This document shows, piece by piece, positions 5,681 through 29,926 of a DNA stretch of 64,000 nt. The notes below the pieces were generated by a model. That model did not search any database, had not been told where the DNA came from, and saw nothing but the letters and a program-made list of their open reading frames with translations. The stretch is from Macrostomum lignano. Its lineage: Eukaryota. The position numbers and the translations under genes are program-made. Every line of letters begins with the position of its first letter. The first letter of the stretch is position 1. The stretch lies in the NCBI GenBank assembly GCA_002269645.1, contig NIVC01003390.1, positions 4,228 to 68,227 on the forward strand. Reading direction: 5' to 3'.

Positions 5681-8115
5681 AGATTAGCTCATAGACAAGA
5701 ATGGGGCTGGAAGCTAGTCATGCATGTAAACGAATGCACTAAAAGTTAAAAATTAATATAAATTACGAACTACCTTGCTTTCAATAACTGAGTTCGTTCA
5801 GCAGATGCAGAAAGTTTATAGTGGAGATCTGAGGACCTACTCTCTGTCGATAAAACTCGAACTTGAAACCCCCTTGACTCGGAGGCGTTGGGCACGTACC
5901 CAAGTTTTGTCCCCATTTATAAGTCATAGAAACAAGGCAGGCATCTGGCTATTGGGGCACTGCGGCCTGGTAACAGGCAACTTTTACCTGTAAGAGAGCC
6001 ATTGAGCCCGATTTTTTACAATGAAATTTACTCATAACTACCCTCTCGGTCAGTTTAACGGGCCCAGGGCCAGGCCGGTCTTGCACACTTTTCATTGTGA
6101 GAACTATACACAGCCGCCTTAAGCAGAAGTATTCTTAGTGCATGCGAGTCGAGAGATGTTCTTAGGTTCCCAAAGACGGTTTTGTCTCTGCAAGGTCTCT
6201 CTATGTTATAAATACCAGACGTTGGCAACCAACATATTCTTGGCATTTTCGTCGCCTCTGCCACAAAGGAGCGGGCGAGTTACTTCATGCAGAGGTCACC
6301 CGAACGAAACAGTTTCTCGCAAACCGTCCAACAAAGTGCATGCATGATGGGCATTGCATTTTTTATGCACCGCAGATGTCATTTCTATTAAGGATTTAAG
6401 GCAAACATTAATTTCATTTTTCAAGTTCAGGTTGCCCTTTCATATTTTACTAAAGCCCTACTAGATGATGGTTACTAGGATTGGTCACTAGCTAAGCCTG
6501 TTGCTTAGCCTCTGTTCAGCAGCCCCAAGGATCTCTGCCTTGAACATCACGATGACAACAAGCACCCAAATGTATGGGGTCGACGTGTGGGACATCACAG
6601 GATCGAGAGTAGTCTCGAATTGCAACATAAAATCTGTAGATTGAGTCAGACGGCGTGGATCAAGTCCATGTCTCATTACCTTGGTGGGATGAACCAGAAT
6701 CACCATTTTTGCGTAATTTTTAACAAATGATCGACTGATGATCGAACGAAACGAAATGATCGAAACAGCAGAATATACTACTACTCTAGCGCAAGGACTA
6801 CACACAGTGGTCCTTGCTCTAGCAAAAATCTCGTATGCCTCGACAGCAGTAGAAGCACTAAAGTAGGTTTCGCCATTTAGAAAATTGTGATTTCTCGAGA
6901 CCATGCTAACTGCATTACTGAACTACAGCAATACGAAAATATACGCAAGGACCACTGTATATACGTGAATATACGTTCTCTAATGAACTCCATCTCATTT
7001 CTAAGAAAATAGTGTGTAACGTCATTCCACTTCACTTGTCCACAGGTCAAACTCAGACCAGTAGACGATGGATTGTTCAAGAACGAGTAGGCCTAGGAAA
7101 GATTTTAGGTTGCTGATTATGCCTAAAACCAGTGAATATTCGGAATTTATGAAGTCAGCGTTTCTCAGCGTACAGAACGTTAACAGCTCGTTAATCGCCT
7201 AAAGAAACATAACAAAATTTGTTGTAAACCAGGCCCAGTCAGATTCAATGTCGCTGCGACGAAGCTGTAGGCCTAACTTACATTTATCTTTAAGTTAAAT
7301 GTATTTTATTGTATCTTTTGCCTTTTAGTATTAGGCCTATTATTAAAAACGTTAAGACTTAAGTAAATATCTTTAAATGGATTTTTTATTTAAGTATAGT
7401 GGATAGCGGATAGCCTATAAGCTTTGTTTGCTCTAACGTGCAAGTTTTTAATAACGAGATGTGCATGTGCCTATGATAATTCTTCCATTAACATTGTAAC
7501 TTGATGTTTTTAAATTGTTTTTATGCCTATGCCTATGATAGTTTTGTTTTCTTTATATTTTTATAACTTTTTATATTCTTAATCTTATATAGGGCCTAGT
7601 TAGGCCTATATTTTTTGCATTTGTATATTTCATCTTCTTTGATCTAATATTTCTAAGATTATTTATAACTTTTTTGTAATTTAAATAAATGGTTATAAAT
7701 AATTGTTTATATAGATGTATATAATACATATATGATTATCTTATAATATTCTATAGATAATTATAAAGGAAATTAAGTCAAGTGGCTTAATGCCTTAACC
7801 CCTTAATAATTTCTTTTTCTTTTAAATTTGAAAAATAAGAAGTTTCATAATATAAATCAATTTATTTCTTATAAAATTCTATTAGACTTGCATTCTAGAG
7901 CTTTTTTAAATGTATATTAATGTTAATTCTTATCTTTCTTGAATTAAATAAAATGATTATATATTATACCCTTATACTTAATGTAGTATCACTGCCACTC
8001 TACCAATTTCCCTAAGTAGATATAAGCCTATGCCCTATTGGAATAACTGCATATATAGTATATGACTATATGCTATACAAAGTTATAAAATTTTGATTCC
8101 ATCTTAATTGATAAT

Positions 8116-8410
8116 AAATAATTAATTACACCTGCCCAATGGGCAGATGTGCAACCGACAGCTCAGCCGCAGCTATTGCGCGGCGCATCTGAAGGCTGCG
8201 TACGGCTGTTCAGTCCAAGGACTGGGGGGTCGCCACACACACCCTCAATTACCCCAGCTAATGCTGGTACCCATTTTACAGCTGGGTAAACTGAAGCAAC
8301 GCAGAGTTAAGTGTCTTGCTCAAGGACACAAATTGTTGCAGAGGGATCGGGAATTGAACCCCCAACCTTCAAGTCGTGAGTCCGACGCCCTAACCACTAG
8401 GCTACAACCC
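8116..8410 (-). mobile_element. tRNA-derived SINE with CORE(MIR)-like central domain, copy 1
   Basis: The minus strand begins with a tRNA-like head (TAGCCTAGTGGTT A-box, GGTTCAATTCC B-box). The plus-strand segment cccattttacagctgggtaaactgaagcaacgcagagttaagtgtcttgctcaaggacaca resembles the MIR/CORE consensus. The 3' end has a hairpin CTGCCC-ATT-GGGCAG and an AT-rich tail. A second copy lies at 9411-9680. Confidence 0.8.
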
Positions 8411-9024
8411 ATCTTGCACTATTCCATCTTGCACTACTATAAAATTAATAATATTTATATATAATATTTACTGTGCCTAAGCATGTTTACAAATGTATGC
8501 CATATATCCATAGGATTTGAAATTGTATTCCAATAGGGAGCCTTTGGATATATAGTTATGTAATAGGTTTTTATATAAAAGTATATAGTAGCCTAGCTTT
8601 ATTTATATTTAAGCATATATACACTTTATTATGCCTTAAAAGTTGATCATCAAGGGCATAAATTGCATAAGCAAAACCAAGCTAAGATTCAAATTTAGCT
8701 CCAAATATGACTAAACTTGAATTCAATCTTAGTACCACACTGTATCACTAGGCTTTGCTCCACCCTATGTGACCCTATCCCAATAATTATAACTATTAAT
8801 ACTTCAAATGAAGTACAAGTAGGATACGTCATGACGCAGTAAAAAAAACCTAGCCTATGATAATAACTGCAAACCATATTTCTCAGTCTACTTCTGTAAA
8901 TGATGTATTCAATATTTAGCCAATTCAAGCCAAAAAAACGTGCTGTTTTCAGCTTGAACCAGCTTGGCCATGTAACAGATTGCAAAGCTGTTCTGCCACC
9001 CTGCTAACATCTTGAAATTCAACA

Positions 9025-12000
9025 ATGTCATCTGACAATAATGTTAAGCGAGAGTACCAAATGGACTTCAACATTGTTGAAGCTGCCAATGCTGAGGATG
9101 AGTTCTCATTTTTTGCCAGCCTCCCGGATATACAGCCATCAACATCGGCTGGTCTGTCATCATCCACGTCTGCAACATTGCAGTCTGCTGCGACTGGGGG
9201 CTTCAGCTATGGGCACCTGATTGGCCAGATGGTGCTGGATGTGAGTTGTGGGACTGCTTAGTCACCTTTAGAAAGTCTGGATGTGAGTTTTGGGACTGCT
9301 TAGTCACCTTTAGAAAGTCTGGATGTGAGTTTTGGGACTGCTCAGTTACCATTAGAAAGTCTGGATTTGAGATGTATGACTTCTTAAATTAATATAATAT
9401 TAATAAAATTGATTACACCTGTCATAATGGGCAGATGTGCAACCGACAGCTCAGCCGCAGCTATTGCGCGGCGCGTCTGAAAGGCTCTGTACGGCTGTTC
9501 AGTCCATAGACTGGGGGGTCGCCACACACCCTCAATTACCCCAGCTAATGCTGGCACCCATTTTACAGCTGTGTGAACTGAAGCAATGCAGAGTTAAGTG
9601 TCTTGCTAAATGACACAAATAGTTCCGAGTGGGGTCAAGAATCGAACCCCCGACCTTTCAGTCGCGAGTCCGACGCTCTAATATTTATAATTAGTCTACA
9701 ATATTTCATAATTATATTTGAAATGCAAACCACCGCTACAGACTGTCGAAGGCTTCCTGCTGGTTGTGAACGAATCTGCTATCATTGACTTCGCCTCGCA
9801 AAATGTTGCTGCCTACACTGACTATACGGCGGAGGATCTGGTGCACAGGCCGCTCTATACAATTCTGCATAACGAAGACAGACAGCTGGTTCAGCCGCTC
9901 ATTGCCTCTGTGGCTGGTAAGGGGCTGCTCTAGGCTCTACTAGTGCTCGAATCCCACAGCCTCATCTCCAGCTTCCAGTGTCCTAGGCCCTACTAGTGCT
10001 CGAATCCCACAGCCTCATCTCCTGCTTCCAGTGTCCTAGGCTCTACTAGTGCTCGAATCCCACAGCCTCATCTCCTGCTTCCAGTGTCCTAGGCTCTACT
10101 AGTGCTAGAATCCCACAGCCTCATCTCCAGCTTCCAGTGTCCTAAGCTCTACTAGTGCTCGAATCCCACAGCCTCATCTCCAGCTTCCAGTGTCCTAGGC
10201 TCTACTAGTGCTCGAATCCCACAGCCTCATCTCCAGCTTCCAGTGTCCTAGGCTCTACTAGTGCTCGAATCCCACAGCCTCATCTCCAGCTTCCAGTGTC
10301 CTAGGCCCTACTAGTGCTCGAATCCCACAGCCTCATCTCCAGCTTCCAGTGTCCTAGGCTCTACTAGTGCTCGAATCCCACAGCCTCATCTCCAGCTTCC
10401 AGTGTCCTAGGCTCTACTAGTGCTCGAATCCCACAGCCTCATCTCCAGCTTCCAGTGTCCTAGGCCCTACTAGTGCTCGAATCCCACAGCCTCATCTCCA
10501 GCTTCCAGTGTCCTAGTCCCTACTAGTGCTCGAATCCCACAGCCTCATCTCCAGCTTCCAGTGTCCTAGGCCCTACTAGTGCTCGAATCCCACAGCCTCA
10601 TCTCCAGCTTCCAGTGTCCTAGTCCCTACTAGTGCTCGAATCCCACAGCCTCATCTCCAGCTTCCAGTGTCCTAGTCCCTACTAGTGCTCGAATCCCACA
10701 GCCTCATCTCCTGCTTCCAGTGTCCTAGGCCCTACTAGTGCTCGAATCCCACAGCCTCATCTCCAGCTTCCAGTGTCCTAGGCCCTACTAGTGCTCGAAT
10801 CCCACAGCCTCATCTCCAGCTTCCAGTGTCCTAGGCCCTACTAGTGCTCGAATCCCACAGCCTCATCTCCTGCTTCCAGTGTCCTAAGCTCTACTAGTGC
10901 TCGAATCCCACAGCCTCATCTCCAGCTTCCAGTGTCCTAGGCCCTACTAGTGCTCGAATCCCACAGCCTCATCTCCAGCTTCCAGTGTCCTAAGCTCTAC
11001 TAGTGCTCGAATCCCACAGCCTCATCTCCAGCTTCCAGTGTCCTAGGCCCTACTAGTGCTCGAATCCCACAGCCTCATCTCCAGCTTCCAGTGTCCTAAG
11101 CTCTACTAGTGCTCGAATCCCACAGCCTCATCTCCAGCTTCCAGTGTCCTAGTCCCTACTAGTGCTCGAATCCCACAGCCTCATCTCCTGCTTCCAGTGT
11201 CCTAGGCCCTACTAGTGCTCGAATCCCACAGCCTCATCTCCAGCTTCCAGTGTCCTAGTCCCTACTAGTGCTCGAATCCCACAGCCTCATCTCCTGCTTC
11301 CAGTGTCCTAGTCCCTACTAGTGCTCGAATCCCACAGCCTCATCTCCTGCTTCCAGTGTCCTAGGCCCTACTAGTGCTCGAATCCCACAGCCTCATCTCC
11401 AGCTTCCAGTGTCCTAGTCCCTACTAGTGCTCGAATCCCACAGCCTCATCTCCTGCTTCCAGTGTCCTAGGCCCTACTAGTGCTCGAATCCCACAGCCTC
11501 ATCTCCAGCTTCCAGTGTCCTAGTCCCTACTAGTGCTCGAATCCCACAGCCTCATCTCCTGCTTTCAGTGTCCTAGGCCCTACTAGTGCTCGAATCCCAC
11601 AGCCTCATCTCCAGCTTCCAGTGTCCTAGTCCCTACTAGTGCTCGAATCCCACAGCCTCATCTCCTGCTTCCAGTGTCCTAAGCCCTACTAGTGCTCGAA
11701 TCCCACAGCCTCATCTCCAGCTTCCAGTGTCCTAGTCCCTACTAGTGCTCGAATCCCACAGCCTCATCTCCTGCTTCCAGTGTCCTAGGCCCTACTAGTG
11801 CTCGAATCCCACAGCCTCATCTCCTGCTTTCAGTGTCCTAGGCCCTACTAGTGCTCGAATCCCACAGCCTCATCACTACTAAGGGATTCCGAATGGCGCG
11901 ATTTTGGAGGTGAGGTGGGTGTCAACCCTCCTCGCCTCTCATTGGCTGGCGCCCCGATCACTAGGTGATCGATACCCGTATCGATATCGGCGACTCGAAC

Positions 12001-15000
12001 CCGCGACCCTCCCCAGCCGCAGGCGCACCTACCGATATTAGATCCCAATAAATCAATCAGATCCCAAATCAATCAGATCCCAAATCAATCAGATCCCAAG
12101 CGCACCCTCCCGAGCCGCAGGCGCCCATGCAGCAGGCGCCCATGCCGCAGGCACCCCGAGTGTACACTCTCCCGATATGTGTGTACACCGATATGTAGTC
12201 ATCGATACGGGCCTCTTCCCCTCTCTCACCTACATCTCAACTAGCGAAATCGAACCCAGGTCGCGCCCATACTAGGACACTACACGGTTGTGGGGTATAG
12301 GGAGCGAGAAGTTTCAACCCTAACGCTGACGCAGCCCTGTACAGTGAGAGTGTACGGGCAGAGAGGGGTGGGGCGGACAGAGAACCAGCCACTAGGTTGT
12401 TATACTGTTGAAGCATAGGGAGCGAGAAGTTTTAACCCCGATGCTGACGCAGCCCTGTACACTGAGCGTGTACGGGCAGAGGGTGGGTGGAAAGAGATGT
12501 GAATAACACAGCCTGCTGCAGGAGCCGGATAGAGAGGCGCATGCTAGGACAGAGAGGTAGTGTGAGTCACACACACCCCACAGAGAAAGCCATACAGAGG
12601 ATAGAGAGCTCCCTCCCCAGTTGCAGGGGACAGAGAGGCAGGCAGGGTATGCAGGGGCATGCGAACCGTCAAGGGGCCACGCGAGGATAGAGTGGAGGAG
12701 CAGAGATGTGTTTGGACAGAGAGCCAGCCACGTGTGCGTAGTGTGAGGGAACAGAAACATATGGAGCAGGAGGGAGATAGGAAGCAAACGCGCAGGGTAA
12801 GGGAGCCATGCAGCAGGGAGCAGTGTACAGTGAGACACGGGCAGGGGTGGAGCCGTGCGTGGACAGAGCTGAACGGCACGGTCAGCTGCAGGAATAGGAT
12901 GATAGAGAGGCGCGGAGGGGGACAGAGAGCAGTGTGCAGGGTAGGCAGCCACGCAGGCTGGGGAACAGAGAGGCGCGTGTCAGCCAGTTACAGCCCGGGA
13001 CAGAGAAGTATGAAGGGGGGCCTGGGACAGAGAAGTATGAAGGGGGGCCTGGGACAGAGTTGCGAGCAAGGCACAGAGAGAGGTAGGGTCCGGTAGCTAT
13101 GTATAGGCAGGGACCCACGCGAGGGCAGGACAGGGCATGCAAGGCATGCAAATTACATGCAAGGGCAGTGAGGTGTGCGCGGAGGGAGACAGAGAGCAGT
13201 GTGTAGGGGTAGGTAACAGCAAACTTTAGTAGAGGCGCGTGCGGGGACGGAGAAACCAGTCTGAGCGTACAGAGACGTTACAGAGAGGTACACAAACAGA
13301 GACCAAAGCGGGCAGAGCACGTGTAGGGACAGAGACGTGAGGGAGAATAGACCAAAACACGCTATGTATTTTCAAAAGTTGGTTTTAGTGCAGCATATTT
13401 AATAGCGGGTAGTATAATAGTATGTACATAGTAGGTATAATGGTAGTAATAATAGTAAGTATATTAGCCCAAAAGGTAGGCTAAAACAGGCTAAACTGTG
13501 TGTACGCATCCTCATCACCCCACAAGCCCCCTCTCCCGCCAGACTCACTCTTCCATACCCTCCTGTATTGCTGTATGAAGGAAAATATAGTGTAAAAATA
13601 CAGATCTTAACCGTCAGACCGCTGAAATCAGGGCACACTAGAGGGGTTTCGGGGTCTGCATGCTCTATGTAAGCTGTTTCAATTATGTTTTGAAAAAACT
13701 AGGGGCTTAAATACAACGTTTTATTCAAAAAGTAGGTTATTTTAATGAAATAGCTGACACAATCATTGTCGAGAGTAGAAATTTTTATAAGAAACCAGGC
13801 ATTTTAGCAAAAATAAACCTTCAAACCACATAAAATTGAATAAAAAGCAGACATTTTCAATTATAAACCGCAAGTATTTTAATAGAAAAGTAAGCAAACA
13901 AGGCACAAAACCAGCAAATTTTACCTTTTTATTTTAATGTTACTGATAAGGTAGAGAGTAGAAACTTGTGAGCTGTACGGAGTTAGAAAGTATTAACCAT
14001 TATGTATCGTATGAATTATTAGTTCAGTACCAGCCATTGGTCAAGCGAGCATTTATGAAGTTATTACGAGTGATGAAGGGATAGAGAGCTATATACAGGA
14101 AGACAGTATCCTTCTAAACCACCACGAACAGATTGCTAATAGAGATAAGCTTTGTCTGTGTGCAGTATGAGTAAGCGAAGGCGGGGCAAATACTTTTCCA
14201 CATGCCGGACAGAACAGTATTGTGCTAGGATTTCTCTCGAAATCGCGGTACGTTACTAGTTTTTATCACACCATCCAGATGCGTCAACTAGTCAGCAGTA
14301 GTCATTTATATGTTATTAGAACTTACAAACCCAGGTCAAGTAAATATTACAAAGAGTATATTACGTACACACGCCAACTCCGAATACCAAGCCATACTAG
14401 TCTACTTGCAGTGCTCCTGGAGGGAAGGGACGGCGGGGTGTACACCCGGCAGGGTGGGCGTCCAGCGAGTGTACATCTGACAGGATGGGTGTTCAGCAAG
14501 TGTACATCTGACAGGGTGGGCGTTCAGCAAGTGTACCTTCAGCGTCGAGTAGGTGTACACCCGTCAGTGGGGAACTCCACCCCTCCCACCAATGTCGTGT
14601 GCATGCGGTTAGTCAGTATAGTGGTGGGGTAGACGGTGCAGGAAGGAAACCCAGATGCTGACGCTGCCCTGTACAGCGAGCAACCAGCCCCCTGTAGCAG
14701 GAGGGGGACAGAGAGTGCGTGGAGGCAGTAGGAGATAGAGGACGCTACCCGGCATGTCGCAGCACGCGGCGCGGGACAGAGGCAGTGTGTAAGTCACCCC
14801 CGCGGAGAGAGCTCCCCTGGCAGGAGGCGCGGGACAGAGAGGCGGTGAATCACACCCCACGGAGAGAGCCGTACAACGAGCTTCCCCACCCGAGTCCGGT
14901 AAATATTACAGAGTATTACGTGCACACACCAGCCCTGAATACCAAGCCATACTAGTCTATCTGCAGTGCTCCCAGAGGGAAGGGATGGTCAGGAGTTACA

Positions 15001-18000
15001 CACCAAGAATGCATTCATACAAAGAGTACACAACTCGAGCCCAGACACCAAGTCACAGTCTACTTACAGTAGAGATGGTAGATTAATAGCAAGATTATAT
15101 TACAATTAGACCTCTCTAGCACATGAGGAGTGAAATTCAATAATAATTGAATTCAATAATAATACAACATTTAGACGTAGTAATTTAATTACAAAATACC
15201 ACTAACACTGAGCCAACGAATTGTAGGTTACAAAGGAGTTGCCACTCATATGGAAAGCCAGTATAATGCAGGTGTGTATTATTAAAACATAGACAAAAAC
15301 GATGCAGACGTATATACACACTATTGATTTTGTACATGTACATTTCGGCATATTACCACACATCGCGGGCACATATTATATATCGGGGGATAGGTTAAAA
15401 TACACACATCGTAGATGTAGAAGCAGACACAATGCAGGAAAATTATGATACGAGTGTACATATTAGTGCGTAAAAGTATCATATTATGACACCCTGTAGC
15501 ACATATTGACATAATGCAGGGGAAAATATTGACAGAAATAGTACACAATTGTAGAGGTAACAACCAGCCAACTAGTAAGGGCATCCAGCACTTGTTCAGG
15601 TTTTTTTTATTTCGAGACGAGTGTCATGCCCCGCAAGAGATCTTATCAGAAATTTGTTGAACTCCACTGCAACTCTCCCCAGAGCCTCCAAATGGAGTTT
15701 TAACACTTGAGGGGATCCCGCTCAATGTACAGTGCGGACGGAGAGGGGTAACAGAAAGCGCTGCATCAGACCGCGGAGCTGCATTCCTCCCCCGAGGTAG
15801 GCGCGTCAGCTCCCACTCCTCATTTAACCATCAAGTAAACTAAAGAAGTCAAGCAGAAAGCCTTACAATCACCCGCAACCAGCACAAGTAAGAGTACTTT
15901 CCACTAGAGAGCCATAGTGCAAGATTCGCGAGCCAAGTTGAAGAAGCACACCAAATTACACTAAAGACATATGTATTAAAAAGCATACCGGCACCTCTAC
16001 AAAAACACAGTATGTACCGATTAAAGTTGCTTTTGGTGCAGTGTATTTAATAAAAAGCAGGTACCTAACACAAAAGTAGGCATCAATGCAGTGCACGGGC
16101 TAAACTGTATTTACAAACGCAGGGCAACGAACTACACACAATGTAGCGCATAGACATAATTGTACACATAAATGTACGCAATCTCCGGTATATAGGACCA
16201 AATGTACGCAAATGTACACAATGCACACAAACACACACACACTCAGGCGCATCCTGCAGCGCATCCTGCAGCACCGATCGCCGCAGGCGATGGCGCCATC
16301 GGCAGGAAGCTCTTGCTGTGAATACGCCTGAGTGTGTGTGTGTTTGTGTACATTGTGTACATTTGCGTACATTTGGTCCTATATACCGGAAATTGCGTAC
16401 ATTTATGTGTACAATTATGTCTATGCGCTACATTGTGTGTAGTTCGTTGCCCTGCGTTTGTAAATACAGTTTAGCCCGTGCACTGCATTGATGCCTACTT
16501 TTGTGTTAGGTACCTGCTTTTTATTAAATACACTGCACCAAAAGCAACTTTAATCGGTACATACTGTGTTTTTGTAGAGGTGCCGGTATGCTTTTTAATA
16601 CATATGTCTTTAGTGTAATTTGGTGTGCTTCTTCAACTTGGCTCGCGAATCTTGCACTATGGCTCTCTAGTGGAAAGTACTCTTACTTGTGCTGGTTGCG
16701 GGTGATTGTAAGGCTTTCTGCTTGACTTCTTTAGTTTACTTGATGGTTAAATGAGGAGTGGGAGCTGACGCGCCTACCTCGGGGAGGAATGCAGCTCCGC
16801 GGTCTGATGCAGCGCTTTCTGTTACCCCTCTCCGTCCGCACTGTACATTGAGCGGGATCCCCTCAAGTGTTAAAACTCCCATTTGGAGGCTCTGGGGAGA
16901 GTTGCAGTGGAGTTCAACAAATTTCTGATAAGATCTCTTGCGGGGCATGACACTCGTCTCGAAATAAAAAAAACCTGAACAAGTGCTGGATGCCCTTACT
17001 AGTTGGCTGGTTGTTACCTCTACAATTGTGTACTATTTCTGTCAATATTTTCCCCTGCATTATGTCAATATGTGCTACAGGGTGTCATAATATGATACTT
17101 TTACGCACTAATATGTACACTCGTATCATAATTTTCCTGCATTGTGTCTGCTTCTACATCTACGATGTGTGTATTTTAACCTATCCCCCGATATATAATA
17201 TGTGCCCGCGATGTGTGGTAATATGCCGAAATGTACATGTACAAAATCAATAGTGTGTATATACGTCTGCATCGTTTTTGTCTATGTTTTAATAATACAC
17301 ACCTGCATTATACTGGCTTTCCATATGAGTGGCAACTCCTTTGTAACCTACAATTCGTTGGCTCAGTGTTAGTGGTATTTTGTAATTAAATTACTACGTC
17401 TAAATGTTGTATTATTATTGAATTCAATTATTATTGAATTTCACTCCTCATGTGCTAGAGAGGTCTAATTGTAATATAATCTTGCTATTAATCTACCATC
17501 TCTACTGTAAGTAGACTGTGACTTGGTGTCTGGGCTCGAGTTGTGTACTCTTTGTATGAATGCATTCTTGGTGTGTAACTCCTGACCATCCCTTCCCTCT
17601 GGGAGCACTGCAGATAGACTAGTATGGCTTGGTATTCAGGGCTGGTGTGTGCACGTAATACTCTGTAATATTTACCGGACTCGGGTGGGGAAGCTCGTTG
17701 TACGGCTCTCTCCGTGGGGTGTGATTCACCGCCTCTCTGTCCCGCGCCTCCTGCCAGGGGAGCTCTCTCCGCGGGGTGACTTACACACTGCCTCTGTCCC
17801 GCGCCGCGTGCTGCGACATGCCGGGTAGCGTCCTCTATCTCCTACTGCCTCCACGCACTCTCTGTCCCCCTCCTGCTACAGGGGGCTGGTTGCTCGCTGT
17901 ACAGGGCAGCGTCAGCATCTGGGTTTCCTTCCTGCACCGTCTACCCCACCACTATACTGACTAACCGCATGCACACGACATTGGTGGGAGGGGTGGAGTT

Positions 18001-21000
18001 CCCCACTGACGGGTGTACACCTACTCGACGCTGAAGGTACACTTGCTGAACGCCCACCCTGTCAGATGTACACTTGCTGAACACCCATCCTGTCAGATGT
18101 ACACTCGCTGGACGCCCACCCTGCCGGGTGTACACCCCGCCGTCCCTTCCCTCCAGGAGCACTGCAAGTAGACTAGTATGGCTTGGTATTCGGAGTTGGC
18201 GTGTGTACGTAATATACTCTTTGTAATATTTACTTGACCTGGGTTTGTAAGTTCTAATAACATATAAATGACTACTGCTGACTAGTTGACGCATCTGGAT
18301 GGTGTGATAAAAACTAGTAACGTACCGCGATTTCGAGAGAAATCCTAGCACAATACTGTTCTGTCCGGCATGTGGAAAAGTATTTGCCCCGCCTTCGCTT
18401 ACTCATACTGCACACAGACAAAGCTTATCTCTATTAGCAATCTGTTCGTGGTGGTTTAGAAGGATACTGTCTTCCTGTATATAGCTCTCTATCCCTTCAT
18501 CACTCGTAATAACTTCATAAATGCTCGCTTGACCAATGGCTGGTACTGAACTAATAATTCATACGATACATAATGGTTAATACTTTCTAACTCCGTACAG
18601 CTCACAAGTTTCTACTCTCTACCTTATCAGTAACATTAAAATAAAAAGGTAAAATTTGCTGGTTTTGTGCCTTGTTTGCTTACTTTTCTATTAAAATACT
18701 TGCGGTTTATAATTGAAAATGTCTGCTTTTTATTCAATTTTATGTGGTTTGAAGGTTTATTTTTGCTAAAATGCCTGGTTTCTTATAAAAATTTCTACTC
18801 TCGACAATGATTGTGTCAGCTATTTCATTAAAATAACCTACTTTTTGAATAAAACGTTGTATTTAAGCCCCTAGTTTTTTCAAAACATAATTGAAACAGC
18901 TTACATAGAGCATGCAGACCCCGAAACCCCTCTAGTGTGCCCTGATTTCAGCGGTCTGACGGTTAAGATCTGTATTTTTACACTATATTTTCCTTCATAC
19001 AGCAATACAGGAGGGTATGGAAGAGTGAGTCTGGCGGGAGAGGGGGCTTGTGGGGTGATGAGGATGCGTACACACAGTTTAGCCTGTTTTAGCCTACCTT
19101 TTGGGCTAATATACTTACTATTATTACTACCATTATACCTACTATGTACATACTATTATACTACCCGCTATTAAATATGCTGCACTAAAACCAACTTTTG
19201 AAAATACATAGCGTGTTTTGGTCTATTCTCCCTCACGTCTCTGTCCCTACACGTGCTCTGCCCGCTTTGGTCTCTGTTTGTGTACCTCTCTGTAACGTCT
19301 CTGTACGCTCAGACTGGTTTCTCCGTCCCCGCACGCGCCTCTACTAAAGTTTGCTGTTACCTACCCCTACACACTGCTCTCTGTCTCCCTCCGCGCACAC
19401 CTCACTGCCCTTGCATGTAATTTGCATGCCTTGCATGCCCTGTCCTGCCCTCGCGTGGGTCCCTGCCTATACATAGCTACCGGACCCTACCTCTCTCTGT
19501 GCCTTGCTCGCAACTCTGTCCCAGGCCCCCTTCATACTTCTCTGTCCCAGGCCCCCCTTCATACTTCTCTGTCCCGGGCTGTAACTGGCTGACACGCGCC
19601 TCTCTGTTCCCCAGCCTGCGTGGCTGCCTACCCTGCACACTGCTCTCTGTCCCCCTCCGCGCCTCTCTATCATCCTATTCCTGCAGCTGACCGTGCCGTT
19701 CAGCTCTGTCCACGCACGGCTCCACCCCTGCCCGTGTCTCACTGTACACTGCTCCCTGCTGCATGGCTCCCTTACCCTGCGCGTTTGCTTCCTATCTCCC
19801 TCCTGCTCCATATGTTTCTGTTCCCTCACACTACGCACACGTGGCTGGCTCTCTGTCCAAACACATCTCTGCTCCTCCACTCTATCCTCGCGTGGCCCCT
19901 TGACGGTTCGCATGCCCCTGCATACCCTGCCTGCCTCTCTGTCCCCTGCAACTGGGGAGGGAGCTCTCTATCCTCTGTATGGCTTTCTCTGTGGGGTGTG
20001 TGTGACTCACACTACCTCTCTGTCCTAGCATGCGCCTCTCTATCCGGCTCCTGCAGCAGGCTGTGTTATTCACATCTCTTTCCACCCACCCTCTGCCCGT
20101 ACACGCTCAGTGTACAGGGCTGCGTCAGCATCGGGGTTAAAACTTCTCGCTCCCTATGCTTCAACAGTATAACAACCTAGTGGCTGGTTCTCTGTCCGCC
20201 CCACCCCTCTCTGCCCGTACACTCTCACTGTACAGGGCTGCGTCAGCGTTAGGGTTGAAACTTCTCGCTCCCTATACCCCACAACCGTGTAGTGTCCTAG
20301 TATGGGCGCGACCTGGGTTCGATTTCGCTAGTTGAGATGTAGGTGAGAGAGGGGAAGAGGCCCGTATCGATGACTACATATCGGTGTACACACATATCGG
20401 GAGAGTGTACACTCGGGGTGCCTGCGGCATGGGCGCCTGCTGCATGGGCGCCTGCGGCTCGGGAGGGTGCGCTTGGGATCTGATTGATTTGGGATCTGAT
20501 TGATTTGGGATCTGATTGATTTATTGGGATCTAATATCGGTAGGTGCGCCTGCGGCTGGGGAGGGTCGCGGGTTCGAGTCGCCGATATCGATACGGGTAT
20601 CGATCACCTAGTGATCGGGGCGCCAGCCAATGAGAGGCGAGGAGGGTTGACACCCACCTCACCTCCAAAATCGCGCCATTCGGAATCCCTTAGTAGTCTC
20701 ATCTCCAGCTTCCAGTGTCCTAGTCCCTACTAGTGCTCGAATCCCACAGCCTCATCTCCTGCTTTCAGTGTCCTAGGCCCTACTAGTGCTCGAATCCCAC
20801 AGCCTCATCTCCAGCTTCCAGTGTCCTAGGCCCTACTAGTGCTCGAATCCCACAGCCTCATCTCCTGCTTTCAGTGTCCTAGGCCCTACTAGTGCTCGAA
20901 TCCCACAGCCTCATCTCCAGCTTCCAGTGTCCTAGTCCCTACTAGTGCTCGAATCCCACAGCCTCATCTCCTGCTTCCAGTGTCCTAAGCCCTACTAGTG

Positions 21001-24000
21001 CTCGAATCCCACAGCCTCATCTCCAGCTTCCAGTGTCCTAAGCTCTACTAGTGCTCGAATCCCACAGCCTCATCTCCTGCTTTCAGTGTCCTAGGCTCTA
21101 CTAGTGCTCGAATCCCACAGCCTCATCTCCAGCTTCCAGTGTCCTAGGCTCTACTAGTGCTCGAATCCCACAGCCTCATCTCCAGCTTCCAGTGTCCTAA
21201 GCCCTACTAGTGCTCGAATCCCACAGCCTCATCTCCTGCTTCCAGTGTCCTAAGCCCTACTAGTGCTCGAATCCCACAGCCTCATCTCCAGCTTCCAGTG
21301 TCCTAAGCCCTACTAGTGCTCGAATCCCACAGCCTCATCTCCAGCTTCCAGTGTCCTAGTCCCTACTAGTGCTCGAATCCCACAGCCTCATCTCCAGCTT
21401 CCAGTGTCCTAAGCCCTACTAGTGCTCGAATCCCACAGCCTCATCTCCAGCTTCCAGTGTCCTAAGCCCTACTAGTGCTCGAATTCCAGTCCAGGTTTCA
21501 CTTTTTGGCTCGAATTTCCGCAGGAACGGCGCCAGTCAATCCGCACTCCAGCCGCGCTGTCCTGCGCCTGCTGCCCAACTGGCACCCAGGCGGCGCTCCT
21601 CGCGCCGGATCGGCGGCCCGTCAGCCGCTCGCGCTGGAAGCGACGCTGAAAGTCCAGTCGCTGTCCGACAGCCAATCAAGTTCGCCCGGTAAGCGCTGAC
21701 AGCTTCCTGACTGCTCTGGGACTGAATCTGTAGGTTAATTAGTTTGCATTTTCAAACTGATCAGGCTTATCTCGGCGCTACCTGGTCTGCTTGATGAAGC
21801 TGTCGCCTCCGCAGCAGCGGCAGCAGCAGCAGCAACAGCAGATGTCCTTGCCGATCCAGTCGTCCCAGCCGCCTCCAACTACCAGGGCTTCACTGTCTAT
21901 CTCGGGTTCCAGGAGTCAGCCGCAGCCGCCGCCTCAGCCGCATTCTCTTTCCGATTATATTTCCTGCCAGCACTCCTGCTCGGGCAGCAATGAGGTGCTG
22001 CAGGCCGTGTGCAGGTGAGGGGCCGGCCAGCTGATGTTCCAGTGTTCCTGGCAGACAGAAACTGACAGAAAATGGGAGACACTATGGCAGACCATGGGAG
22101 ACACTATGGCAGACCATGGGAGACACTATGGCAGACAATGGGGGACACTATGGCAGACAATGGGAGACACTTGAAGACAATTTGAAACACTTGCAGACAA
22201 TAGGAGACACTATGGCAGACAATGGGGGACACTATGGCAGACAATAGGAGACAATGGGAGACACTATGGCAGACAATAGAAGACACTATGACAGACAATA
22301 GGAGACAATGGGAGACACTATGACAGACAATGGAAGACACTGAAAGACAATGGGAGACACTATGGCATACAATGGGAGACACTATGGCAGACAATAGGAG
22401 ACACTATGGCAGACAATAGGAGACAATGGGAGACACTATGACAGACAATGGAAGACACTGAAAGACAATGGGAGACACTATGGCATACAATGGGAGACAC
22501 TATGGCAGACAATGGGAGACACTATGGCAGACAATAGGAGACACTATGGCAGACAATAGGAGACACTATGGCAGACAATGGGAGACACTATGGCAGACAA
22601 TAGGAGACACTATGGCAGACAATAGGAGACACTATAGCAGACAATAGGAGACACTATGGCAGACAATAAGAGACACTATGGCAGACAATAGGAGACACTA
22701 TGGCAGAAACTCTCAGATAACTAGACTGAAACTGACAGACAAACCGACAAGCAAGCATATAGACCTCAGACAGACACTGAGACACAGACGGGTAGACAGC
22801 TGCGGACACCAAGACTGTATCTGTGTGGCAATGCAAATATCAGCCTGCCAGTCTGTCATCCAATCCTTTCTGAGCAGCTCCGCCCTGGCCAGCAAGCTGT
22901 CTGTGAGATCGGATTTTTTCATTGGCCGGCGCTGGTGCAACCTGGTGCTCCCGGCCGACCGGACCATCTGGCAGCGCCACGTTGAGGATGTCGGTGAGTT
23001 CAGGGGGCCGACACGGTTGTAGTCTCGGGTTCTATGCTTGGCATGAACTATTAACACCCAGCTGCTCTTTCTCATTGAATCAGCCTGTCCGTTTCTTAGA
23101 TAAAAGTACGAGTTCTGGTTAAATTCCCACTACTCCAACCCGCCCCACTCGCAGTGTCGAGCCGCGATGCCTTGTCCAGCGGCATCTACCGCTGCCTGGT
23201 GACCGCGGCCGGTCAGATGGCCTTTGTAAAAAGTCGCAGCTACCTGACCGACCAGCAGTCTGGCCAGTTCACATCTACCCACTGCATTATCAGGTAGGCC
23301 ATAGCGACGATATGTAAACTTTAATATTGGTGGCACTTTCCAAGAAACAGGAGCTAACTGGTCGTTTGGAAGGGCCAGGACGGCGCTATACTACTACTGC
23401 TGCCACTACTGCTACTACTACTACTACTAAATACTAATACTACTACTACTAATGCTAATACTACTACTACTACTACTATTACTACTACTACTGGTACTAC
23501 TACTACTACTAATACTACTACTAATACTACTAAATACTAATACTACTACTACTACTACCACTACTACTACTACTACTACTACTAAGCTAGTTAAACAGTA
23601 GGATATGCTTTATTCGCGCAGATTCTGCGACTCGGAAGCGGATCTCAGCGGCGCTCCGTCCGCCAGTCTGCTGCGCCGGGTCGGCTCCGGCAGCGGCAGC
23701 AGCCCACCGGCGGCGTCGCTGCAGCAGCAGCCGCAGCCCCGCCCCTCTCTGGGGCCTCGCGAACGCCAGGAGCTGCTCAGCCTGGGTGCCCTGTACAAGA
23801 GCTGCGCCAAGCAGGACCCGGACCGGGCGGAGGCCCTGCGCAACCGCATGCTGGCTTTGTGGTCGGACTCTCAGCAGCAGCAGCAACCGCAGCCTCCCCA
23901 GGCTCAGCCGCAGACTCCGGCACCGGCGCTGTTCCTGTCGGCGCTGCCGCGTACGACGGACGCTTCATCATCGCTATCAACCCTGACAACCAGCGGCCAG

Positions 24001-26047
24001 CAGCCGGCCTCCCTGCTGATGAAGCTACTCAATGGGCCGAGCCAGCACTCATGCGCTGTCAGCCTCACATCCAACACGCTGCAGGTTCGCTGCTGAAGTT
24101 TTAGGGGCGGGACTGGCAGCGCACACAGAAATCTGGGGTTGGGGGCTGGCAGCGCACACAGAAATCTGGGGTTGGGAGGCTGGCAGCGCACACAGAAATC
24201 TGGGGTTGGGGGCTGGCAGCGCACACAGAAATCTGGGGTTGGGAGGCTGGCAGCGCACACAGAAATCTGGGGTTGGGAGGCTGGCAGCGCTCACAGAAAT
24301 CTGGGGTTGGGGGCTGGCAGCGCACACAGAAATCTGGGGTTGGGAGGCTGGCAGCGCACACAAATCTGGGGTTGGGGGCTGGAAGCGCACACAGAAATCT
24401 GGGGTTGGGAGGCTGGCAGCGCACACAAATCTGGGGTTGGGGGCTGGAAGCGCACACAGAAATCTGGGGTTGGGGGCTGGCAGCGCACACAGAAATCTGG
24501 GGTTGGGAGGCTGGCAGCTCACACAGAAATCTGGGGTTGGGAGGCTGGCAGCGCACACAGAAATCTGGGGTTGGGAGGCTGGCAGCGCACACAAATCTGG
24601 GGTTGGGAGGCTGGCAGCTCACACAGAAATCTGGGGTTAGGAGGCTGGCAGCGCACACAAATCTGGGGTTGGGGGCTGGCAGCGCACACAAATCTGGGGT
24701 TGGGGGCTGGCAGCGCACACAGAAATCTGGGGTTAGGAGGCTGGCAGCGCACACAAATCTGGGGTTGGGGGCTGGCAGCGCACACAAATCTGGGGTTGGG
24801 GGCTGGCAGCGCACACAAATCTGGGGTTGGGGGCTGGCAGCGCACACAAATCTGGGGTTGGGGGCTGGCAGCGCACACAGAAATCTGGGGTTAGGAGGCT
24901 GGCAGCGCACACAAATCTGGGGTTGGGGGCTGGCAGTGCACACAGAAATCTGGGGTTGGGGGCTGGCAGCGCACACAGAAATCTGGGGTTAGGAGGCTGG
25001 CAGCGCACACAAATCTGGGGTTGGGGGCTGGCAGCGCACACAGAAATCTGGGGTTGGGAGGCTGGCAGCGCACACAGAAATCTGGGGTTGGGGGCTGGCA
25101 GCGCACACAGAAATCTGGGGTTAGGAGGCTGGCAGCGCACACAAATCTGGGGTTGGGGGCTGGCAGCGCACACAGAAATCTGGGGTTGGGAGGCTGGCAG
25201 CGCACACAAATCTGGGGTTGGGGGGCTGGCAGCGCACACAGAAATCTGTGTGGGGGGCAGTCCCTAGTCTAGGTCGCGCATCCTGTACTGCTGGGCACAC
25301 AGCGCACAACTCCCATCTCCCAACCCCGATCCCACACAGGAGCTGCTGTGCGCCAAGGAGACGCAGGCTCGAATGGCCGAGCAGCAGCAGGTGAGCTCCA
25401 CCACGGCCACGCCGAGCACGCCGGGCAGAAAGCGCCAGCCGTCTTGGCCGGAGGAACTCGGCGGAGGCGGAGACGTGGACAGCAGCACGCAGCAGCTCGG
25501 CGGAGGCAAGCGAAAGCCACCAGGCGGCACGCAGCTGCTGGCGGCTCTGCTGAGCGATTCGGCGGCAGCGGCGGCAACGACTTCGGCGGCTTCGTCGGCT
25601 GCTGCGAATCGCGGACCGGCTGCACCCGCGGCCATTGCGGCTGGAGGCGGCGACAACGGTAACGGAGGGGAGGAGACCGGCGTGCTGGACAGCATCTTGA
25701 AGAGCATCGATGATTTAAAGCAGCAACAGCAGCAGCAGCAGCTGCTGCAGCAACAGCCGGCTGTGACCATTGCGCTGATTCAGCAGCCACCTCCGCCGCT
25801 GCCGCCACCAACTCCGCCGCAGCAGCCGCAGCCGGTGGACATTGCAGGCAGCGCCGAACTGCCCGAAGATGTAGTGCTGGACATCATTCTGGATATGGAG
25901 GAGCGGCACAGGCAGCCGGCGCCGGACTCCACCACGCCTGGCAGCGCAGGCAGCGGATCCGGCGGCGTCGGAGCCTCGCCGTCCGCCCCGGCCGCGCCGC
26001 CGTCAAACAGCGGAGGCGGCCTACTTGAAAAGCTGCTAAGCAGCTGA
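9025..26047 (+). CDS. NCOA: p160/SRC/NCOA (Taiman-like) nuclear receptor coactivator, PAS-A + PAS-B + LxxLL motifs, about 759 aa
   Basis: Phase-consistent GT-AG exons: 9025-9240, 9742-9916, 21476-21688, 21765-22014, 22878-22993, 23155-23293, 23622-24084, 25340-26047 (2,280 nt). PAS-A: LIGQMVLDTVEGFLLVVNESAIIDFASQNVAAYTDYTAEDLVHRPLYTILHNED. PAS-B end: GIYRCLVTAAGQMAFVKSRSYL..FTSTHCIIR, similar to NCOA VYRFSLADG..QTKSKL..VSTHFL. LxxLL motifs: LMKLL, LQ|ELL (spanning a splice junction), LAALL and C-terminal LEKLL. Confidence 0.85.
9237..9366 (+). repeat. 42-bp tandem triplication containing the intron-1 donor (GGAT|GTGAGT)
   Basis: Units start at 9237, 9279 and 9321, with a partial unit at 9363. 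Confidence 0.9.
9411..9680 (-). mobile_element. tRNA-derived CORE-like SINE, copy 2 (head slightly truncated), in NCOA intron 1
   Basis: Aligns end to end with 8116-8410 at high identity, with B-box GGTTCGATTCT on the minus strand. Confidence 0.8.
9930..11874 (+). repeat. 53-bp minisatellite, left block (about 36 units)
   Basis: Unit CTAGGCCCTACTAGTGCTCGAATCCCACAGCCTCATCTCCAGCTTCCAGTGTC; period confirmed (9983 to 10036). Confidence 0.97.
11875..20697. mobile_element. Giant palindromic (foldback) insertion, 8,823 bp, 6-bp TSD CTCATC, termini ACTACTAAGGG...CCCTTAGTAGT; probable non-autonomous Polinton/Maverick-like or novel DNA element
   Basis: Left arm 11875-16249 is the reverse complement of right arm 16325-20697, and ORF-track pairs mirror around 16286-16287. 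The spacer is 16250-16324. CTCATC occurs at 11869-11874 and 20698-20703, and the host minisatellite continues in the same orientation and phase on both sides. No transposase, integrase or polymerase ORF. The structure is certain; the family assignment is inference. Confidence 0.85.
20698..21490 (+). repeat. 53-bp minisatellite, right block (about 15 units); the last unit supplies the real 3' splice site of NCOA exon 3
   Basis: Same unit as 9930-11874. The final copy reads ..ccctactag|TGCTCGAATTCCAG into coding sequence. Confidence 0.95.
22070..22705. repeat. Compound minisatellite (GACACTATGGCAGACAAT(A/G)GGA-type, about 21-22 bp)
   Basis: Visible tandem array in NCOA intron 4. Confidence 0.9.
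23385..23585. repeat. (TAC)n microsatellite
   Basis: About 200 bp of imperfect TAC repeats in NCOA intron 6. Confidence 0.95.
24105..25250. repeat. 31-35-bp G-rich minisatellite (CTGGCAGCGCACACAGAAATCTGGGGTTGGGAGG)
   Basis: Tandem array in NCOA intron 7; it generates many spurious overlapping ORFs. Confidence 0.95.
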
Positions 26048-28764: not shown

Positions 28765-29893
28765 TCACTGAGGCACCGGCGCTGGGGAGAAAATACTTTT
28801 ACCAGCGGCGTAGTAATGCAGCGGCTGCGGAGGCGGCGGCGGACCGCCGGGGGCCGCAGTTGATGTCTGTTGCTGCCTCTGCGGCTGCGAAGTCTGCATG
28901 TACATCGGTGGCGGAGGCTGCTGCTGCGGCTGCGAAGCCTGCATGTACATCGGTGGCGGAGGCTGCTGCTGCGGCTCCTGCTGACTTGGCTCCGGCTGGC
29001 TGTCAGCACCGCTGCCGCCGCCGCCGCCAAACATCCTACCGAACATGCGAGAGAACATGCCTTGGCTGGCCTGCTGCTGCGGCGGCTGCTGTTGTTGAGG
29101 CGGCTGCAATTGCTGCTGCTGAGCAGCTTGATTCTGCTGCGACGACTGCATCTGAGACTGCGCCTGACTCTGCTGGGGAGGCGGCTGTGTCACTGGCTGG
29201 CCCACTTGATACGGACGAGGAGGCGGCTGGAATCGCTGCTGCTGCTGGTATTGCAGCGTCGTCGACTGCGGAGCCTGCTGCTGCGGCGGCTGAGACTGTG
29301 GGTATTGCTGCTGCTGCGGTGGCTCAGTCTGTGGGTACTGCTGCTGCTGCGGCGGCTGAGACTGTGCGTATTGCTGCTGCTGCGGTGGCTCAGTCTGTGG
29401 GTACTGCTGCTGCTGCGGCGGCTGAGTCTGTGGGTATTGTTGCTGTTGCGGTGGCTCAGTCTGTGGGTACTGCTGCTGCTGCGGTGGCTGGGGCTGTGGG
29501 TATTGCTGCTGCTGTGATGGCTGAGACTGTGGGTATTGCTGCTGCTGTGATGGCTCAGCCTGTGGGTATTGCTGCTGCTGCGGTGGCTCAGTCTGTGGGT
29601 ACTGCTGCTGCTGCTGCGGTGGCTGAGTGTGTGGGTATTGTTGCTGCTGCTGCTGCGGTGGCTCAGTCTGTGGGTACTGCTGCTGCTGCGGTGGCTGAGT
29701 CTGTGGGTACTGCTGCTGCTGCGGTGGCCGAGTCTGTGGGTATTGCTGCTGCTGCGGTGGCCGAGTCTGTGGGTGCTGCTGCTGGTGCGGTGGCCGAGTC
29801 TGTGGGTGTTGCTGCTGCTGCGGTGGCTGAGTCTGTGGGTATTGCTGCTGCTTCTGCTGCTGCTGCGGTGGCTGGGGCTGTGGGTATTGCTGC

Positions 29894-29926
<33 letters not shown>

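Follow-up and report, generated by a model that had tools for sequence, protein, structure and literature searches.

The mobile elements that come closest to the DNA described here fall into two groups. The first are the Maverick/Polinton elements; intact vertebrate Mavericks are 12.7 to 24.6 kb long and densely coding, carry terminal repeats of 46 to 1,447 bp, and are flanked by perfect 6-bp duplications, and their 6-bp end motifs are tandem di- or trinucleotides that are thought to serve jumping-back in protein-primed replication (PMC8097293). This class is present in flatworms: Polintons are present and expressed in planarians (PMC8532177), and polintovirus-like insertions have been reported in Rhabditophora (bioRxiv 10.1101/2025.04.19.649669). 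The second group are the foldback elements, among them FB, Tetris, and Galileo of Drosophila and Tm1 of root-knot nematodes, which have long inverted arms around a short middle, lack coding capacity, contain degenerate internal and subterminal repeats, are flanked by a duplication of 8 to 10 bp in the Mutator-like majority, and are mobilized in trans (PMC4079207). In the literature we found no report of Mavericks or foldback elements in the flatworm Macrostomum lignano. Here we describe an almost perfect, gene-less palindrome of 8,823 bp from this species, located at positions 11875 to 20697 of a 64,000-nucleotide (nt) stretch of contig NIVC01003390.1 (record positions 4,228 to 68,227, forward strand; assembly GCA_002269645.1, Mlig_3_7). 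This whole stretch is referred to below as the window, and a window position equals the record position minus 4,227. We interpret the palindrome as probably a recent germ-line insertion of a non-coding, non-autonomous foldback mobile element that consists of two copies of one parental end and was integrated in trans by an enzyme making 6-bp staggered cuts.

Palindromes of other kinds bear on how such a structure might arise. In the genomes of adenovirus incomplete particles and the hairpin forms of yeast linear killer plasmids, a short turn-around separates two inverted copies of one parental end, so that both termini are identical. Large chromosomal palindromes are also known from ciliates, yeast, and tumor cells, where they are formed by fold-back priming at short inverted repeats.

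Results

The element consists almost entirely of two inverted arms. A search for inverted repeats over positions 11000 to 21500 recovered five collinear blocks, 99 to 100% complementary, that pair 11875 to 16252 with 16322 to 20697. A global alignment of the left half against the reverse complement of the right half gave a left arm of 4,378 nt (11875 to 16252, plus strand) and a right arm of 4,376 nt (16322 to 20697, minus strand), the reverse complement of the left, separated by a unique spacer of 69 nt (16253 to 16321). If the last two matching bases are left uncounted, this narrower definition yields arms of 4,375 and 4,373 nt and a spacer of 75 nt. Together the arms make up 99% of the element, which has no core besides the 69-nt spacer. 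The alignment contains four single-base length differences, every one of them in a short run of G or C and probably a consensus error of a PacBio-era assembly, and two C/T mismatches (three if the arms are taken at their wider extent), none of them farther out than the innermost 70 nt. Every substitution between the arms thus falls in an imperfect inner segment of the left arm (16183 to 16252, plus strand), which pairs with 16322 to 16391, and the outer 4,308 nt hold none.

Each end of the element is a trinucleotide repeated twice, ACTACT on the left (11875 to 11880) and AGTAGT on the right; the probability of any such trinucleotide-doublet end arising by chance is about 1/64. The 26-nt terminus occurs within the window only at the two ends of the element (0 occurrences expected by chance), and among the 244 ACTACT/AGTAGT pairs in the window, the element is the sole pair with matching 6-bp flanks. 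These measurements agree with an earlier note on this stretch, made from the letters alone, which had given the arm and spacer lengths by the narrower definition, four 1-bp indels, and two substitutions, and had described the ACTACT...AGTAGT ends with CTCATC on both sides; all of these were recovered in the global alignment or directly in the sequence.

Neither of two structures considered at the center of the palindrome was retained. The spacer folds into small internal hairpins with nothing distinctive about them, and a T-shaped central hairpin of the kind found in rolling-hairpin replicons was dropped for that reason. A sub-threshold match to an Rfam microRNA precursor at 16225 to 16349, present on both strands, scored 45 bits against a gathering score of 100; we deem it spurious, the match being to a generic hairpin with a CA/TG-rich stem and lying far below threshold.

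The element interrupts a host minisatellite with a 53-bp period, of which Tandem Repeats Finder places 36.7 copies to the left of the element (9930 to 11874) and 14.9 copies to the right (20698 to 21488). The hexamer CTCATC immediately precedes the left terminus (11869 to 11874) and immediately follows the right one (20698 to 20703). The register of the 53-bp array is restored only by removing exactly 6 bp, which gives a period identity of 0.957, compared with at most 0.881 for the other offsets from 0 to 12; because the register returns only at 6 bp, the duplication is real and no accident of the repeat. The array-register test thereby supports the earlier proposal of a 6-bp target-site duplication and a genuine insertion.

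Further evidence for insertion comes from the other copies of the same locus. Approximately 85% of Mlig_3_7 is present as three paralogous copies with a single-nucleotide polymorphism rate of 2.2%, and insertions and deletions account for most of the differences between them (PMC10733133). The copy on NIVC01002247.1 (locus L005; product P0073, 747 amino acids [aa]) is collinear with the window on both flanks at 98 to 99% identity, but the gene there is only 6.8 kb long, the array in intron 2 is uninterrupted (13.5 copies, L005:3864-4579), the terminus is absent, and nothing in the locus matches window positions 11875 to 20697. The array is likewise uninterrupted in the copy on NIVC01000795.1 (locus L004; product P0068, 744 aa), with 5.5 copies at L004:10933-11224 and no terminus; a 22-bp array follows at a distance of 578 bp, the same spacing as in the window. 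Since both of these paralogs carry an uninterrupted array, the element must have been inserted after the three copies diverged. A check for empty sites had been suggested beforehand, and its outcome is thus positive in both of the other paralogs. The 53-bp minisatellite itself has 51.6 copies where the element is present, compared with 13.5 and 5.5 in the two empty paralogs, and the insertion may have preceded, or caused, an expansion of the array.

The arms also indicate that the palindrome is young. The paralogs diverge by about 0.5% in the aligned stretch, compared with 2.2% genome-wide (PMC10733133), and at these levels of divergence 22 to 95 differences would be expected between the outer arms, where 0 were observed; the 95% upper bound on divergence between the arms is 0.07%. 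This comparison lends support to the view, already put forward from the sequence, that the insertion or the palindrome is recent. The substitutions that do exist are placed in a manner that is difficult to reconcile with a uniform rate: with two substitutions, the probability that all would be placed in the innermost ~70 nt is about 2e-4, and with three it is about 4e-6. The simplest reading of this two-tier arm, with an old imperfect center and identical outer parts, is an origin by fold-back copying, and because no substitution lies outside the innermost ~70 nt, the fold-back would have taken place at a pre-existing short inverted repeat. The suggestion that one end was copied back on itself is therefore a good fit to the alignment.

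No coding content could be recognized in the arms. The longest open reading frame (ORF) is 186 aa, and all six frames contain 52 to 77 stops per frame of 1,485 codons, which confirms that the element has no long coding ORF. Six-frame translations of the arm, with stops marked as X, matched 0 Pfam families at an E value of ≤1, and a search with one of the six frames returned 0 matches among 5.8 billion proteins. Exact look-ups of the 186-aa ORF and of 10 ORFs starting with ATG found none on record in the protein collection. No tRNA genes were detected in the element, nor any Rfam families at the gathering score, and a BLAST search for vector or phage contamination, run against plasmids and phages, gave no match. 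The left arm is accordingly treated as non-coding on the basis of the ORF and Pfam scans.

Searches for relatives of the element were also negative. There is no second copy within the 64-kb window, and the terminus was found in none of the loci scanned for it; BLAST of L005, and of L001 and L003 outside their overlap with the window, recovered no arm-related sequence. The M. lignano genome is approximately 764 Mb in size. A terminal 22-mer had no occurrence in viral_contigs, and its absence from metagenome_contigs is uninformative, as the host's own abundant 53-bp satellite is likewise absent there.

The interior of the arm is a mixture of repeats and unique sequence. A subterminal 16-bp repeat is present in three copies at 12050 to 12099, and the terminal region of the arm contains small palindromes. 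The tandem sub-repeats of the arm are short arrays (16 bp in 3 copies, 27 bp in 2.5, and 31 bp in 3.2), accompanied by scattered degenerate modules of ~120 bp that are rich in GGGACAGAGAG and occupy 12290 to 13350 and 14620 to 14870. Unique AT-rich sequence accounts for about half of the arm; the AT-rich stretches of the left arm lie at 13340 to 14300 and 15000 to 16250. The 10-mer GCCGCAGGCG is found in two subterminal copies per arm (12016 and 12114 in the left arm, with mirror copies at 20449 and 20547) and once in the spacer (16280), compared with 0.19 occurrences expected in the whole window. Judging from this distribution, the 10-mer may be a protein-binding motif common to the ends and the center.

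The gene that harbors the element encodes a PAS-domain protein on the plus strand (product P0074, 743 aa; BOX15_Mlig006050g1). Exon 1 spans 9025 to 9240 and exon 2 spans 9742 to 9916; exon 3 begins at 21524 and the last exon ends at 26047. Intron 2 (9917 to 21523) is nearly all minisatellite and element, and the annotated model splices across the element. As seen at 25337 to 26047 (plus strand), the product is glutamine-rich and terminates with an LxxLL-type motif (LLEKLLSS), a feature suggestive of a nuclear-receptor-coactivator-like protein.

Several other differences distinguish the paralogous contigs around this gene. A tRNA-like short interspersed nuclear element (SINE) of ~325 bp with a duplication of ~10 bp (ATTCCATCTT) lies at about 8096 to 8420 of the window and is missing at the same place in NIVC01002247.1 (compared with L002:1-3000, minus strand), and a related copy with 88% identity is present in intron 1 of the PAS-domain gene (about 9420 to 9690) on both contigs. 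Only the third paralog carries a retrotransposon of the long terminal repeat (LTR) type of ~9 kb (L004 about 12300 to 21300), which lies within the 22-bp array of the same gene; its direct repeats, at least 300 nt long and 7,933 nt apart, are 100% identical, and it has ORFs of 347, 1,483, and 276 aa. It represents another recent insertion into a tandem array of the PAS-domain gene. NIVC01002247.1 has ~4 kb of additional sequence, including a 33-bp array (L002:3604-4484 and surroundings), between an ankyrin/ion-channel gene and the PAS-domain gene that is absent from the window. The window as a whole has a very high density of minisatellites, with 49 Tandem Repeats Finder rows at periods of 10 to 118 bp, many of them in introns and in glutamine-rich coding exons such as a Sec16-like ORF at 28765 to 30528. 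Its G+C content swings from 34% to 65% over 2-kb windows. A polycystin-like ORF is also present, whose best relative is from M. lignano, and an exact protein match assigns the stretch to contig NIVC01003390.1.

Discussion

The combination of identical inverted termini, an exact 6-bp duplication, two empty paralogous sites, and near-identical arms is the basis on which we regard this palindrome as a probable recently inserted foldback element. The sequence of events that could have produced it begins with an asymmetric parental element that would have held an imperfect inverted repeat of ~70 bp with a loop of ~70 nt. At this inner repeat, a nascent or resected strand would have had its 3' end folded back and extended to the terminus, and the product would be a molecule with two copies of one parental end, both of them usable by the same enzyme. 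A transposase or integrase supplied in trans could then have recognized the ends, made up of the trinucleotide doublets and subterminal repeats, and cut the target with a 6-bp stagger. The fold-back copying may have occurred during replication of a linear element (a snap-back) or during repair of a cut-and-paste transposon; the data fit either, and a conversion in place after the insertion of an ordinary element retains some, lower, probability.

The identity of the helper enzyme can be approached through the duplication, the length of which is the best clue to the enzyme (PMC4079207). The 6-bp duplication and the ends composed of short tandem repeats point first to a Maverick/Polinton-type integrase, a candidate that we place somewhat below even odds, and a cut-and-paste DDE transposase of another superfamily with 6-bp duplications is about as likely. 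The element itself is outside the described foldback families, from which it differs in duplication length, and it is not a Maverick by definition, as polymerase and integrase genes were not found; it could nevertheless be a non-autonomous dependant of a Maverick. The novelty lies in the combination of a foldback structure with a 6-bp duplication and ends of tandem trinucleotides; the arms, which outside the center are identical, rank among the longest described for such elements.

Of the more specific accounts of its origin, the one that survives best, although its chances remain clearly below even, derives the element from a non-Maverick cut-and-paste terminal inverted repeat (TIR) transposon with 6-bp duplications. 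Following excision, template switching or aberrant gap repair would have generated the foldback form, which the DDE transposase of that family would have moved. The architecture is that of a foldback element, with non-coding and very long arms, degenerate internal and subterminal repeats, and a short middle, and foldback structure has evolved independently in several TIR lineages (PMC4079207). The presence or absence of other mobile elements, namely, the SINE and the LTR element, is common between the same paralogous contigs, indicating that the genome is permissive. The resemblance to known foldback families includes a flanking duplication and, presumably, mobilization in trans, but the differences are considerable: the arms are 4.4 kb long and lack regular tandem arrays, they contain no substitution outside the center, and the ends are doubled trinucleotides. 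Most foldback families are moreover Mutator-like with duplications of 8 to 10 bp (PMC4079207), and the 6-bp duplication rules those families out; a P-like foldback element is rejected on the same ground of duplication length (PMC4079207). Ginger1 and Ginger2, which are also TIR elements and use a retroviral-type DDE enzyme, are excluded by their 4- to 5-bp duplications and TGTNR ends, neither of which the element shows (PMC2836005). Duplications of 6 bp are given by few cut-and-paste superfamilies, and an origin from such a transposon leaves the tandem-trinucleotide ends, with their chance probability of about 1/64, unexplained.

The earlier note favored a different origin, in which the palindrome derives by snap-back from a Maverick/Polinton (polintovirus-like) genome: protein-primed strand-displacement replication would have produced a molecule with two identical origins that was integrated in trans by the integrase of its parent, in the manner of a defective or satellite genome. 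We consider this account doubtful, and the fuller version of it, an integrated defective derivative with two identical ends that came from a flatworm Maverick/polintovirus-like element and was both replicated and integrated wholly in trans, unlikely. Hairpin or palindromic deletion derivatives are known among the adenovirus incomplete-particle genomes and from yeast linear killer plasmids, and the fold-back signature at the palindrome center is as a snap-back would be expected to leave it. Those derivatives of protein-primed replicons are extrachromosomal, however, and keep parental genes or origins, whereas the element is chromosomal and gene-less, has a duplicated target site, and shows no sign of protein priming. 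In common with Maverick/Polinton elements, it has a perfect 6-bp duplication and terminal inverted repeats; its 6-bp ends, made of tandem units, resemble a class of motif linked to jumping-back in vertebrate Mavericks (PMC8097293), and the occurrence and transcription of Polintons in flatworms (PMC8532177; bioRxiv 10.1101/2025.04.19.649669) are consistent with a parent of this kind.

The same comparison also reveals where a Maverick origin falls short. The trinucleotides of the element are those of the commonest vertebrate Maverick motif but are on opposite ends, so that the polarity of the end motif is reversed; variant motifs are known, for example, an AC-type motif in one fish (PMC8097293). 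The element is 8.8 kb long rather than 12.7 to 24.6 kb, and its 4.4-kb arms are three times the length of the longest terminal repeats reported, which range from 46 to 1,447 bp. Because Mavericks are densely coding and their terminal repeats are at most 1.4 kb long, a recent 4.4-kb copy of one end should hold about 3 kb of genes, but no coding core and no remnant of a protein-primed polymerase B (pPolB), integrase, capsid, ATPase, or protease was found in the arm by the six-frame Pfam scan at an E value of ≤1 or the one-frame protein search. Short subterminal repeats such as these are a feature more typical of cut-and-paste transposons, and the literature that we searched contains no report of Mavericks in M. 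lignano. The snap-back proposal thus keeps the support of its 6-bp duplication and trinucleotide-doublet ends, and it is weakened by the reversed polarity, the missing gene remnants, and the excessive length of the arms; the giant foldback transposon that had been named as its alternative fits the evidence at least as well.

An improbable course of events is that an asymmetric element with short TIRs was inserted and only later made palindromic in place, through two template switches at an internal inverted repeat and at the terminal repeat, in which case it was never the palindrome that transposed. Inverted homology would be present at both switch points, as it is at the central imperfect repeat, and the duplication and the empty sites prove only that an insertion took place, not what its structure was at that time. 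Such a conversion requires two precise switches, however, there is no trace of a second and different parental half, and the classification of the element would be unchanged by it. Fold-back-primed palindromes of the kind known from ciliates, yeast, and tumor cells are likewise centered on an inverted repeat that is short and imperfect and encloses a unique loop, with identical sequence everywhere outside it, but they arise at chromosome breaks and lack transposon-like ends and a target-site duplication.

An assembly artifact, such as a chimeric fold-back long read, is hardly credible even though the evidence comes from one assembly of the PacBio continuous-long-read era and the arms differ in length at short G/C runs, where consensus errors also occur, for a fold-back chimera would have inverted the flank, whereas the right flank keeps the orientation and register of the array with an exact 6-bp duplication and is collinear with both paralogs for kilobases, and the center has a unique 69-nt spacer with an imperfect repeat in place of a blunt turn-around. 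An LTR element is rejected on account of the inverted repeats and of ends other than TG...CA, and twin priming of the L1 type on account of the missing poly(A) and of two halves that represent one and the same segment.

Several observations weigh against our preferred interpretation of a foldback element integrated in trans. A single copy is known from the window and the loci scanned, so repeated mobility of a family, the defining property of a transposon, is presumed, and no candidate gene for the postulated helper enzyme was found. The polarity of the end motif is opposite to that reported for Mavericks, and the arms are without regular tandem repeats, unlike those of classical foldback elements. 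The measured identity of the arms is approximate, given that their indels in G/C runs could stem from errors in the consensus, and the clustering of mismatches at the center could reflect a hot spot of mutation or of consensus error in a long palindrome.

The finding has several implications for the biology of M. lignano and of foldback elements more broadly. First, it offers, in a regeneration model, a clean and datable case of mobile DNA that was active very recently, and because the element is in one of the three subgenome copies of the inbred DV1 line, it is a possible subgenome-specific marker. Second, a perfect 4.4-kb hairpin in an intron of the PAS-domain gene would be a potential source of double-stranded RNA or small RNA if transcribed, and it may also represent a fragile site. 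Third, the two-tier arm would show the birth of a foldback element from one parental end, a step that is usually inferred rather than seen. If the ends are of the Maverick type, that class would be extended to gene-less palindromic dependants, and if the snap-back origin is true, an animal germ line would contain a palindromic satellite of this virus-like class, one whose end motif has a polarity not described before.

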